Part shown: positions 25,201 through 33,257 of the stretch, piece after piece
Position numbering within the stretch: position 1 is the stretch's first letter
Layout of the letters: the number at the start of each line of letters is the position of its first letter
Origin: Schmidtea nova
Lineage: Eukaryota
DNA length: 64,000 nt
Direction of reading: 5' to 3'
NCBI GenBank assembly: GCA_044892505.1
Contig: CM097883.1
Span: 391,592,001 to 391,656,000, forward strand
Translations under genes and position numbers: made by a program
The notes under the pieces: generated by a model
What the model was told of the DNA's origin: nothing
Seen by the model: only the letters and a program-made list of their open reading frames with translations
Databases searched by the model: none

Positions 25201-28200
25201 CTCTGTGAACTGGGATTTTCAACTCTTACAACAATTAAATCAAAGAAGCGGGAACATATGGTTAACATTGATCAAGAATTAAGAGTTTGTTTGTCAAAAA
25301 TTCCCCCACGATTGGAACTTATTTGTTCGGAACATCAAGCACATAAATCTCATTAACTATGTTTTATGAATTTTTCATTCACCAATTTTTCTAAATTTAA
25401 AATTTTTTACATTAAATTTATTTCAAGTAAATAAGTTTTTCATTTCTTATTAAAAGATTAGTAAAAGTACAATAAAAAATTGCAAATAAAGCAAAAAAAA
25501 ATTTAGGTGTGCCGCGAAAATTTTTAATTCAGCCAAGTGTGTCGTGGCTCAAAAAAGTTTGGACAACACTGATTTACACAAATAAAATTTTAATAATTAA
25601 TACATTTAAAATAAATAATATGATCATACATGAATTGATGAATCAATGTAGGTAAAGTTATTGAATTTAAATTATCTTTAATAAGCCACATTGAGCTAAT
25701 AAGGTTCCTAAACTATACCTTTTTTAGCTTCTGCTTAAATCAAGCAGTAGCGGGCTGGCCGATTTCACCGGACTGACAGACGATTTTAAAACGGCCGTTT
25801 TAGGAAATTAAAAAAGTTAACAGCGCATAATAGTAAAAGAAGATTGTTCAATAAAATAAATAAATTTAACCATCCGAAATCTTTTTATTCTTTTTATTTT
25901 GTTTCTCAATTCTTATTCCTATCAACGAAAAAAATGAAAAATGAAACTAACTGTATATATAGTCTTTAAAATTGCAATTTTATTTAAAAAATAATAAATT
26001 AACAGTGTTAATTTAACACTATTTTTCCGTGCATTCCGATTCTTTTTAGAAATTAAGCCTTGAGTATATGGTTATTGAATAATTGAATAATTTAACTGAA
26101 TTAATTTAAATAATTAAAAATAATTGGGGGTAAATTAACAGACAAGTACCGCTATTCGTTTAAAGTTTAAAAGCGTATTTCATCAGCGTTATTCATATCA
26201 AAGATACGCTCTAATACCAAAATTAATATTTGAAAAATGTAATTTTAACACGAATGTTGGTATTATTTTAATGATATATTTTTATTTTTGGGCCCTCTAC
26301 AGCAACGGTGGAAATGTTTCAGTACATATATATATATATATATATATATATATATATATATATATATATATATATATATATATATAAAGTTATTGTACAA
26401 TTTTTTTAATGATAATTTTGGCCCCTCTAGATCTGAAATAAACGCAAAATTAGAAAGTGTATAAAATATGCATAAGTAATGTAATTCAATGACTGATCAT
26501 TATTGTCGAGGGTATCCAAAATATTAAAATATTAATTAATTAATTTTACTAATTCAGAGTAACCGACAGATATGTAAGGCGACATTATTATTGATTTTCT
26601 GAAGCAAGGCATGGAGAATGAGTTAAGAAATTGTATAAAAGACCTAATATTTAATGATCAGTAAAAAAGTTTAAACGTTCAGCAAATTAAAATTAAAATT
26701 GTCAATAAATAAATGAATAAAAAAACTAATTTTTACATAATTGATCAGTTAAATATTTCATTTGATCAGTATATTTAAAATTATTATCGATAAAGTTATT
26801 GAGTTAGAAATGCACGTTTAGCCTTTGCTGGTCTATCCCGGTTTCATTATCTGCATATACTTTTCGTCCCTCATTAGTTTTGTTTGTGTAATATTTGGAG
26901 CATATCTTATCCAACGATTTTTCTGCTTCTTTTGCAATTTCAAATATCGCTACTTTTACTCAGTTCTTCTGACAACCTCTCTTTTTTGAATGGTATTAGT
27001 TGCTGTTGTTAAGCTTTCATCTTCATCGCTAACATATTCCTCCACTTGAGACATCGCCATTTTTAGTAATGAATCGAGCCAAGACGCTTTTCAATAAACC
27101 TTTTATTTCATCAATAAGCAGATCATCAATAAGCATCAATATTTCGTCAATAATGATCAATACGTCCATCACAATGTCAAAGATATCATCAACAGATGCA
27201 TTGGATTGTTGACGTACGCCAGATGTTTGAATTCCCGATACTAAAATTGATCTTGAATCACAATAAACGTTCCTAGTAGCATCCGCCCCATCGATACTAT
27301 TGATTCGACAGAATTTGCGCATTTTATCCAAATTCATCATTATCATGTCAAATGTTTGATCTCATCTTTCAGGCATTGCTGTTTTTTCATTGACGTACAG
27401 ATTCCAGCACTCGTCGTTTAATCTACCAAATGTGTAGGCATTTCCTTTGACATTAGTAAAGGTAATGATCAATTTCAGCAAAAAGGTCTTGATGAACCAA
27501 TAGTTGACAAGCAGGATTTTCAAATTGTCGACACGAAAAAAAATATCTGGTACTCATGATACCCTAAATGTTTGCCGAATTCCAAAATCGGTTTCAAAGC
27601 ATTTAATAGAACTGTTGTGCCGCATATTTTTGGAATTATTCTCCTTTGCGATAGGAACAAACTGCTTTCCTCAACACATAAGAATCCATATGATCATTGG
27701 ACATTTGTGAAATGATCTGGCAATTGACTTTGTCAAATATTTCAACGACGGACTTTTTAGAAATGGATCGCAAATCGCACTCATTGTCGTCAGAATTAAA
27801 CCATATTTCTAATAACTTTTCACTGCCTTCAAAGAAATATTCCCGTGGAATATGATTAGTTTGATTTTCAAAATCTTTCATAGTTCGGAAATGAATACCA
27901 CTTCAATAATCACCTCTCAGATTTAAACCACTTAAAAAACCAGCATTATTAAAACAACTGATTTAATTGAGTTCCAGCATAATCAATTAAATCCAAAATA
28001 ATCTTGCGCACACCGACGCGAAAGAACAAGGCCAATTGCAGCGTACACAGGCGCGAAAATCATACATCTGGCTGAGCACACAGACGCGAATGAAATAAAA
28101 AATAAATAAAAAAATAATAAGAGCTGCAACCCGCTCACACAGACGCACACAAATCCCAGCCATGCGCACACATACACTAATAAATAGCCACAAGTAATAT

Positions 28201-31200
28201 GTTTTGTTTTTAATAAAATAATTTTTTTAAGTAATGTTGAATGGAAGAATATACTGGTTATATAGGACATATTAACGTACTAATTTAATTATTTTACTGA
28301 TATATAATTCAATTACATGATAAATAATTAAATTTACTTATAATTATTTTATTAAATTGATAATATATATTTTTATACTTATAGGGCAATTTATTTACTG
28401 ATAGTAAAATTTAATTACTGATTTTTAATTAGTTTAGGTTACTGACCATTTAAAGTTTTTTACTGATCACTTAAATCTATGCCTAAAAACAGATAATGAT
28501 CAAATAAACAATAATATTCCAAGTCAGAAGTAATTAATTAATTAAGTTGAAATAAAGAAAATAAAAAAAAGTTCATAACGCTAACAGTTTAAAAATTCCA
28601 AGTCTTTGAAAAGCAAAACCGTTAAGACAAAGTAAAAGGAAAATTGTACAGAAATATTAAACCAGGAACTGCGGTTGTACAATCGCACACATTTTTGAGT
28701 TTCATTAAAAAAATTTCATTTTTTAACTCTTTCTAATAACTTCCAATTTCTGTTTGTTTTCTTGTCAAATTTTGGATCGATTTTTAACCCACTTCCCGCT
28801 ATCCAATCGATCTGAAAATTTGCTAGCATACTCGCGGTGGCCCACAAATTATTCCATTGAAAAAGTGAAAAATTTTGAAAAATTTTGAAACAATGTGATT
28901 TATCAATTTACTGTTGCCAAGAAACTATCAAACAATGAAACAACAACAAAATTAACCGAGAACATGAGAAAAAGAAAGAGTTACATTAAAAACTTGTTTT
29001 TATGGGTTCCTTTTTATATATTTTAGTCAAGTGAGACTTTTTCGAAAATGATTATCAAGTTTAAAGCTTAACACATTCACGAACGTCTACTGCACACATG
29101 CAGCGGTGACCAACAAAGCAAAAATATTGCATATGCAACAGCCGTCTGGAATTGTGTTAAACAGTTTGAAAGAGTCGCCAAACGATTAATTTATTATTAG
29201 CACACTTGAATACTTAAGCGAGTTATATATTTTTGACTTCCTATTCATGTTATAAAATTTTGAACTTATTATCACTGTTGAATGTTTTACGTTGTTTTTC
29301 TTTTTAGGACTGATCTGAATTTCACTGTGGCAATCGACTTTACTGGATCAAATGGCAATCAGAATAATCCGAAATCTCTCCACTATATTCCTCCGTATCA
29401 AATTTCCGGGTCAATGAATCAATATGAAACCGCTATTGTCTCGGTTGGATCAATAATTCAGGTTTTAATATTATTTTTTGTTTAAATTATTACTGAAACT
29501 GTCCTCAGCGTAAAATCGCATTACTAATTGGAAAAAGAAAAAGACCTGTAAGAAATGGTTCTGACACAAACAAAATACAAGAAATCTTAGTAAGCTTTAA
29601 AATACGCTTTCTCCAAAATGGATACCTTGAAGAATTTGTAAAATATTTTTTTCACAAACCCTACCACAATATACTCAACAATAAGAAACGTCAGAAACAC
29701 AATAACAATAACAAACACAAAACTTATCTTCGATTCCTTTGCTTAAATGATAATACAACTAATAAAATCAGAAATATTTTCAACAAAATAAATTTTCCTA
29801 TTCACATTCGTTCTACTTTTATCACTTATGCACCGTTAAAATCACAGCTTCGAAAGCCACCAATATCAAACATCTTTAAACATGTATTTAAATGTATTTG
29901 CCGTTCTACGACCAGGTGCCTTTCCTTTTCCAAAAATATAGCATTTTTCGCACCCGACTTAATGAACAAAGTAAAAATAAAACCAGCAATTTTTACGAAC
30001 ACTGGGAGAAATAACATAAAATTATTCCATCTATTCATGCAACTAAATGCCGACTTTTACAATTTGAATTTCAAAGATTAACTTCTGAAACTTCTTTTAT
30101 CAAAAAACACAAACCGCCCATCAACATTCAATTAGCATAAAAAATCATGTTTAAAGTTTAAAAGTAAATTAAATAAATATTTATCCATTAACATCATTTA
30201 CTATTTAGGATTAAGTTAATAGAACGATTGAAATGCACACTTGATAAAGGCTGTGTCGGAATATTGTGTGCCTTGCAATCAAAATAAAATTTTGATCTAT
30301 AGTCATATAATTATTAATATGTTAATTATTTAATTAGAATAGATAGATATTATTAATATTCAAACATTTCTCTAAATATATTGTTTGTCTCAGGATTATG
30401 ATTCCGATAAAATGTTCCCAGCTTTGGGTTTCGGTGCTAGAATTCCTCCTAATCATGAAATTTCGCATTGTTTTCCAATTACCTTTAGTCCACAAAACCC
30501 GTTCTGTGCGGGAGTAAATGGGCTATTGAACACCTATCGGTCGGCTATCCGACTAGTTACACTTTGCGGTCCTACTAATTTCTCTCCGACAATTCGACAT
30601 GTACAACAGTAAACAAATTTTCATTTATAAAAGTTATTAATTTAATTTATTAATAAATTTAGATTTGCAAAAAACTACAGAGATGGATCAAAATATTTTG
30701 TTTTACTAATAATCACAGATGGAATAATTACAGATCTGCATGAAACCATAGAAGCTATTATAGATTGTTCCGATTTGCCGATGTCTATCATTATTATCGG
30801 AGTTGGAAATGAAGATTTCTCAGGTGGATTACAATATAATTTATTTTTTATTAATTATTTATGATCTGTTAGCTATGGACACATTAGATTGTGATAGGGG
30901 GCGATTGCAAAGCGGTTCAAAAGTTGCGAAGAGAGACATAGTTCAGGTTTTGGATGCTGTAAAGAATTTCTAAAATTTTAACTATTTACTTTTAGTTTGT
31001 GGCAATTAGAAACTTTATAACAGGACCTGAAAAAGAAATCAATCAGTTCGCTTTAAACAAGGCTGTTTTATTAGAGCTACCAAATCAAGTAACTTCGTGG
31101 ATGAAGATAAATGGCAAAATCCCTTTACCAGCTAATAAAAACCCGCAGAAAGTTACAGAAAGTAATAATGAGTCTAGACAACCTCCTTTTCCCGGATCAA

Positions 31201-33037: not shown

Positions 33038-33257
33038 GGTGTGCGCATTGTCTCTATGATAATTTTGGTTATCGCGTCTGTGTGCGCGTAGCTTAAAGAT
33101 TTTGTACTGCGTCTGTGTGCGTGGTTGTAGGTTTGTGCTTTTGCGTCTGTGTGCGCATTTCATTTTTTGTGTTGTTCTCGCGTCCGTGTGCGCATTGAGA
33201 AATTGCTATCAGCGTCTGTGTGCGCTGCGATAAAGACAAGCTCGCGTCTGTGTGCGC
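33038..33257 (+). repeat. Array of six 14-bp GCGTCTGTGTGCGC repeats plus one partial, with unlike 18-23-nt spacers
   Basis: Full copies at 33074, 33109, 33143, 33180, 33212, 33244; partial at about 33038. Confidence 0.9.

Follow-up and report, generated by a model that had tools for sequence, protein, structure and literature searches.

Two arrays of a conserved 14-mer in Schmidtea nova probably belong to the long terminal repeats of a large, pol-less BEL/Pao-type family

Repeated U3 elements are well known from long terminal repeats (LTRs): Tnt1 has tandem U3 repeats, and the LTRs of murine leukaemia virus have enhancer repeats. Transposons that carry gene fragments are likewise familiar, with Pack-MULEs, Helitrons and maize Bs1 among them. 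The promoter in the LTR of the tobacco element Tto1 uses a 13-bp cis-element (Takeda et al. 1999, cited in PMC10794571), and U3, which holds the promoter, is a highly variable part of LTRs (PMC10794571). Here we compare with such systems two arrays of a 14-mer, GCGTCTGTGTGCGC, that lie in a 64,000-nucleotide stretch of Schmidtea nova DNA (GenBank assembly GCA_044892505.1, contig CM097883.1, positions 391,592,001 to 391,656,000, forward strand; hereafter the window, whose own numbering we use). The likely source of the two arrays, in our view, is a large and recently active pol-less family of BEL/Pao type, in whose LTRs they form the U3 and the 14-mer is a putative transcription factor site. 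This is an ordinary kind of feature on an unusual transposon. The arrays are as follows.

28006–28177, minus strand: left array of five decayed 14-mers, with one or two mismatches each, at LTR positions 16–187, in U3
33038–33257, plus strand (full copies 33074–33257): right array of six 14-mers, four of them exact, and one partial copy, in U3
33038–33047, plus strand: the partial 14-mer copy at the start of the right array

When up to two mismatches are allowed, the window holds 11 matches to the 14-mer against 0.04 expected, a number that none of 100 shuffles reached. All 11 are confined to the two arrays and no other copy occurs anywhere in the window, in line with the statement of a first-pass annotation of this DNA that the motif is absent upstream of PRP16, copine and the 4-TM gene. 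Copies start 31, 59, 33 and 35 bp apart in the left array and 35, 34, 37, 32 and 32 bp apart in the right one. Tandem Repeats Finder (TRF) called neither array as a tandem repeat, even at a score of 30, a silence that is expected because the spacers are unlike and the 14-mer alone is conserved. The recurrence of one motif between unlike spacers, as first described, is therefore real, and neither array is a minisatellite of head-to-tail units that include their spacers, since TRF is silent and the flanks carry little information. BLAST of the left array against the right found nothing significant in common beyond the 14-mer; the spacer words ggttg(c/t)ag and atttcatt, which had been read as a hint of common descent, can be seen in both arrays, but no significant likeness accompanies them. 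Both arrays also share the orientation claimed for them, toward an ATG 70–125 bp downstream: the nearest sense ATG follows the last motif copy by 124 bp on the left (27881, minus strand) and by 72 bp on the right (33330, plus strand).

Across the 1.25-Gb, AT-rich genome, the exact motif is present in 10,873 copies (5,474 + 5,399), compared with 0 for a reversed control, and sites with up to one mismatch number 18,662, compared with 73 for the control. Exact copies exceed all 42 one-mismatch variants combined (7,789). The first 100 exact sites, which span 10 Mb, group into about 63 arrays; by extrapolation the genome would have about 6,800; sampled arrays hold one to six copies, all on one strand, 25–112 bp apart (median 37.5 bp). 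The motif logo is sharply bounded, with the extended form (T)(C)GCGTCTGTGTGCGC(A)(T) and flanks that are T-rich and otherwise uninformative. Conservation per position, in what is an ascertainment-biased set, is about 90–99% and about equal at all 14 positions, and the flanks are unconserved. The motif is thus not specific to genes. A literature search for the 14-mer returned unrelated primers only. As no more than a lead, the reverse complement of the motif with its following A holds TGCGCAC, which fits the metal-response-element core TGCRCNC; the A that this needs follows the 14-mer in only 54% of copies.

The connection with LTRs is clearest at arrays elsewhere in the genome, many of which form same-strand pairs 4.55–5.55 kb apart. 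In all nine such pairs that we examined, direct repeats of 760–1,016 bp, 94.7–99.8% identical, surround a single open reading frame (ORF) of 1,076–1,668 amino acids, and the array stands in sense orientation about 4–190 bp from the LTR 5' end. Intact LTRs start with TGTT and end with ACA (the TG..CA class), a primer-binding site, TGGTAGCAGAGC, follows directly after the 5' LTR, a polypurine tract (a purine run with G6-7) comes just before the 3' LTR, and 5-bp target duplications surround the elements (for example, TTAAT in L036). Paired direct repeats, TG..CA ends with a short duplication, and a primer-binding site with a polypurine tract are thus all present, as they should be in LTR elements. 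At four loci (L033, L034, L037 and L038), the LTR terminus runs straight into the first copy of the motif, as TGTT-CGTCTGTGTG; in another subfamily, whose LTRs start with TGTTTCAGCC, the 14-mer is internal only. Related LTRs have their 3' parts in common and array-bearing 5' parts that cannot be aligned, which is the picture that would be expected of a hypervariable, promoter-bearing U3 with a long R and then a short U5 behind it.

The polyprotein ORF of these elements starts within the LTR, 125–530 bp after the array. According to Pfam, it comprises, in order, variable host fragments (HECT, ThiF, a calmodulin-like N terminus, CCT), a piece of HSP70 or HSP90, a complete ubiquitin, DUF1759 and an aspartyl protease with a weak match, with the host-gene scraps making up the first 100–330 residues. 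No reverse transcriptase or integrase was found in the C-terminal 515–638 amino acids of the intact-element ORFs, even at E<=1. Of the set that an autonomous BEL/Pao element has (Gag, protease, reverse transcriptase, RNase H and integrase), we found a DUF1759 Gag and the weak protease only, and because reverse transcriptase and integrase were not found, we consider the elements to be non-autonomous derivatives. Their likeness to BEL/Pao elements (PMC3118150) extends to the DUF1759 Gag, the aspartyl protease, TG..CA LTRs, a tRNA primer-binding site, a polypurine tract and the 5-bp duplication. They differ in having no reverse transcriptase, RNase H or integrase, in an ORF that starts inside the LTR, in the host-gene scraps and full ubiquitin before Gag, and in insertion into (AAT)n microsatellites. 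A literature search on planarian, BEL and ubiquitin-Gag elements found nothing specific.

Almost all of the intact elements (L032–L039) are embedded in microsatellites of (AAT)n/(ATT)n that continue on either side of them, which suggests microsatellite-targeted integration. L031 (9986000–9995999) holds three arrays at intervals of exactly 4,568 bp, together with a direct repeat of 1,997 bp that reaches the end of the locus; its appearance is that of several elements in head-to-tail tandem with common LTRs and not of one element.

The LTR context extends well beyond paired arrays. The sample comprised the two window arrays and 32 unpaired ones, the latter all within the first ~8 Mb of chromosome 1 (34 in total), and we compared them all against all by masked BLAST, since (AAT)n microsatellites swamp an unmasked comparison. 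In 32 of the 34, co-oriented sequence within 1 kb downstream is common to another array locus, often at different offsets, so the LTR bodies appear to be mosaic. Ten of the 32 unpaired arrays end 670–1,035 bp downstream in a recognisable LTR terminus without a primer-binding site. The longest sense ORF with an ATG within 350 bp downstream has a median length of 120 amino acids, compared with 30 in a mirror control (p = 6e-4), and the ORFs that follow the sampled arrays are mostly inner pieces of host proteins, namely of ABC transporter, CCT, AdoMetDC, FKBP, proteasome and EF-Tu-type GTPase proteins. None of the sampled arrays resembles the promoter of a single-copy host gene: instead of the single-copy, intron-containing genes that such promoters would have downstream, 32 of 34 have a repeated LTR-type context. 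Direct BLAST of the window against the nine sampled LTRs, of which its copies might have been solo versions, matched the motif repeats only, and the link of the window copies to the LTR family was made through subfamily relatives.

The left window copy consists of the following.

27070–28192, minus strand: complete solo LTR of 1,123 bp, AdoMetDC-scrap subfamily, with TG at 28192 and CA at 27070
27636–27881, minus strand: ORF of an 81-amino-acid AdoMetDC N-terminal fragment, covering Pfam SAM_decarbox positions 2–62, broken by a stop; a transposon-borne scrap

A target-site duplication, TTACT, flanks this LTR (28193–28197 and 27065–27069), and about 1,400 first-look candidate copies match it from 27961 to 27070 (minus strand) at up to 92% identity, all of them ending at 27070. 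No primer-binding site, polypurine tract or internal region adjoining the LTR was found, which, together with the TG..CA ends and the TTACT duplication, makes this unit a solo LTR. It sits within an intron of a copine gene on the plus strand, antisense to the gene, with copine exons on both sides (C2 near 20.1 and 23.5 kb; vWA and tail at 29.3–31.6 kb), and it is probably without effect beyond this placement. With every motif copy mutated, the ORF broken and no more than 92% identity to other copies, the left LTR is old and decayed.

The AdoMetDC ORF had initially been taken for a gene, unrelated to the orphan ORF after the right array, that its array serves. A genome search with PF01536 argues otherwise, since it returned at least 633 candidate loci of an intronless AdoMetDC 5' fragment. 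All 118 scored candidates have E<=2e-31 and are intronless, and most start at profile position 2–3 and end at positions 147–232 of 343. At L003, L045 and L057, such a copy is preceded by an array of its own. We therefore rejected the array as the promoter of the host AdoMetDC gene: the matches are intronless and partial, and the window copy, itself broken by a stop, lies inside a solo LTR with a target duplication, so what the window holds is evidently an amplified gene fragment inside an LTR and not the host gene. The ends of the AdoMetDC fragments cluster at profile positions ~147–150, ~195–201, ~209–214 and ~231–232, as though the fragment had gone through several rounds of recombination with other scraps.

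The right window copy is less complete.

About 33026–33748, plus strand: 3'-truncated LTR of about 720 bp, its 5' end (TG, 33026) inferred from the alignment starts of most copies
33330–33787, plus strand: LTR-internal ORF, frameshifted, with 62 amino acids from the ATG at 33330 and then 33524–33787; the intact relative has 211 amino acids (L020)

About 2,900 first-look candidates match 33026–33741 at up to 98% identity; among them are pairs on one strand, separated by 5,141 and 5,147 bp. Copies of lower similarity start to align at one 14-mer unit after another of the right array, which shows that array copy number varies. Two relatives, L020 and L053, run about 200 bp further, to a conserved LTR terminus in common with the intact L033; this tail was not found elsewhere in the window. 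As expected for a truncated LTR, no target duplication was seen at the right copy, and neither a primer-binding site nor a polypurine tract was found beside it. The orphan ORF gave no match in Pfam and, in Atlas, weak and mixed helical-repeat look-alikes with low recognition. It too had been listed as an unrelated gene, an identification that gives way to that of an LTR-internal unit with about 2,900 first-look candidates. The right LTR is young but without its 3' end. Exactly at the break of the fragment (33739–33765), a 14-bp unit, GTTGCAACTTAAGT, is duplicated, which may be the scar of a deletion or rearrangement. Nearby, on the minus strand (34675–37915), is a compact Gypsy-like element without the 14-mer, whose 109-bp LTRs are 100% identical and therefore point to a very recent insertion. 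As a cause of the truncation, we rejected this neighbour, which has its own LTRs (34675–34783 and 37807–37915), the missing tail being nowhere in the window.

Further signals complete the layout of the LTRs in the window.

27943–27957, minus strand: TATA-like box TTGTTTTAATAATGC, 48 bp after the left array; the well-conserved part of the LTR begins here
33274–33288, plus strand: TATA-like box TTGTTTTATTAATCG, 16 bp after the right array
27102–27107, minus strand: AATAAA, a hexamer that resembles a poly(A) signal, 38 bp short of the 3' end of the solo LTR

The TATA-like box, TTGTTT(T/A)A(T/A)TA(T/A)TCC, is present at 22 of 43 array loci compared with 1 of 43 controls, at a median of ~80 bp after the last 14-mer. 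Among seven intact elements examined, from different subfamilies, five have AATAAA or ATTAAA 35–41 bp before the LTR 3' end, a sixth has it at 23 bp and the seventh has none. The LTR would accordingly be ordered as one to six sense 14-mers within the first ~200 bp, the TATA-like box, a leader, the polyprotein ATG, and AATAAA ~40 bp before the end. We envision that the 14-mer is the binding site of a sequence-specific host transcription factor and that, multimerised, it would give the LTR strong and directional activity as a promoter or enhancer for RNA polymerase II. If transcription starts shortly after the TATA-like box, U3 would measure ~200–300 bp, followed by a long R and a U5 of ~20 bp. 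In the leaders (the 300 bp after the arrays at 43 loci), TTT[GA][GA]ATTT words are enriched, for example TTTGAATTT at 18 of 43 loci compared with 1 upstream, and these could be a second repeated element, in the R region.

This arrangement resembles Tto1, Tnt1 and murine leukaemia virus in several ways: the 5' part of the LTR holds several copies of a short motif, with a TATA-like box downstream of them; the copy number varies, and U3 is far more variable than the remaining LTR; and solo LTRs scatter the module through the genome. Here, however, the spacers are unlike, so that there is no true tandem duplication, and the first copy may be fused to the LTR terminus. With Pack-MULEs, Helitrons and Bs1, the family has in common intronless or partial host-gene fragments, in hundreds of copies, that are easily mistaken for genes. 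Unlike in those elements, the scraps lie in the LTR and the 5' end of the polyprotein, in frame, and are not internal passenger DNA.

The arrays reside in U3, have a direction, keep their motif and vary in copy number. The first-pass annotation had envisaged a multimerised, directional, promoter-like module travelling on mobile DNA, and the anatomy fits that description; the module is, however, the LTR of the transposon itself and does not serve two unrelated genes. Its authors had named subterminal repeats of a transposable element as the outcome that would count against their idea, and arrays in the U3 of LTRs are essentially that. Four points weigh against our own interpretation as U3 promoter modules. 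The information content of the logo is inflated, since sites were chosen with up to two mismatches; the genome sample is the first ~8 Mb of one chromosome (chromosome 1); the transcription start, and hence the U3/R border, is a matter of inference from sequence; and a constant sense orientation is also what plain inheritance within one transposon lineage gives.

A more far-reaching version, which we hold to be unlikely, is that the 14-mer is the site of one host factor, such as a stem or germ cell factor, that the whole LTR superfamily needs, and that the ~6,800 arrays, of which many would stand on solo LTRs, are directional promoters. If this were true, compact directional promoters throughout the genome could rewire neighbouring host genes, and a small, strong promoter module could be borrowed for transgene expression.

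The repeats might instead act in RNA, with the GU-rich 14-mer (its GCG...CGC could close a 3-bp stem) recognised by Gag or by an RNA-binding protein of the host, to serve in packaging, stability or export. U3 is part of the 3' untranslated region of genomic RNA in LTR elements, so that the placement of the arrays would suit such a role, as would their strict sense orientation and the self-complementary ends of the motif. The stem would be only 3 bp long, however, and where copies in the window are mutated it is lost with no compensating change. Conservation is about equal over all 14 positions, those of the would-be loop among them, which fits recognition of double-stranded DNA better. Rfam, too, gave no match to the motif, and we consider a role in RNA quite improbable.

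Still more doubtful is the proposal that the repeats are a minisatellite-like expansion without function, passive duplicates of the LTR-terminal sequence that integrase recognises, or, alternatively, landing pads for a host repressor. The LTRs of L033, L034, L037 and L038, which begin with TGTT-CGTCTGTGTG and have internal copies resembling the terminus, agree with passive duplication, as does a copy number that ranges from 1 to 6. Yet the motif is kept across subfamilies whose spacers and neighbouring U3 cannot be aligned, exact copies (10,873) outnumber one-mismatch variants (7,789), the TGTTTCAGCC subfamily carries the motif only internally, and there is no inverted copy of it at the U5 end. 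Equal conservation of the positions, a stem broken without compensation and a motif that outlasts unalignable U3 are the reasons why we rate these alternatives below a transcription factor site in U3.

Largely refuted, and in our estimate very improbable, is a core-promoter or enhancer motif of ordinary host genes, possibly captured by transposons together with gene 5' ends. In its favour, the arrays have a direction and precede ORFs that start with ATG by 70–340 bp, LTRs that are otherwise related have different U3 parts, and there are scraps that start at residue 2 of their host protein. Against it, 32 of the 34 sampled arrays are set in sequence that recurs at corresponding positions, most of the ORFs downstream are inner pieces of host proteins, the AdoMetDC fragment lacks introns, is cut short and occurs at no fewer than 633 candidate loci, no array precedes any intron-containing gene in the window, and four subfamilies fuse the first motif copy to the TGTT terminus, which indicates that the motif belongs to the element itself.

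Read as parts of LTRs, these arrays matter first for annotation, because the ORFs here named AdoMetDC and orphan are, like hundreds of others, scraps on transposons and should not be called genes. In addition, the 14-mer provides a simple and highly specific marker (~18,700 sites compared with 73 for the control) for the LTRs of this element family, one that also finds solo LTRs with bodies so mosaic that they cannot be aligned. Should the motif bind a defined factor, it would show how a recently active family, with LTR pairs up to 99.8% identical, is controlled, and would provide a compact promoter module as well.

Several neighbouring features of the window were noted as well. A sub-threshold Rfam match to a C/D-box small nucleolar RNA (snoR126, 28.8 bits compared with a gathering score of 39 bits, E = 0.05) at 32606–32705, outside the arrays, is probably due to chance. 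ORFs in copine introns at 21536–21727 and 25069–25356 resemble, by eye, the C-terminal dimerisation regions of hAT transposases. Another stretch of copine intron, 29505–30144, matches L022, L037, L043 and L059 at 68–80% identity and is therefore another dispersed repeat. The copine gene itself ends, at 31194–31603, in 13.7 tandem copies of a 30-bp unit that encodes a proline/glycine-rich decapeptide.

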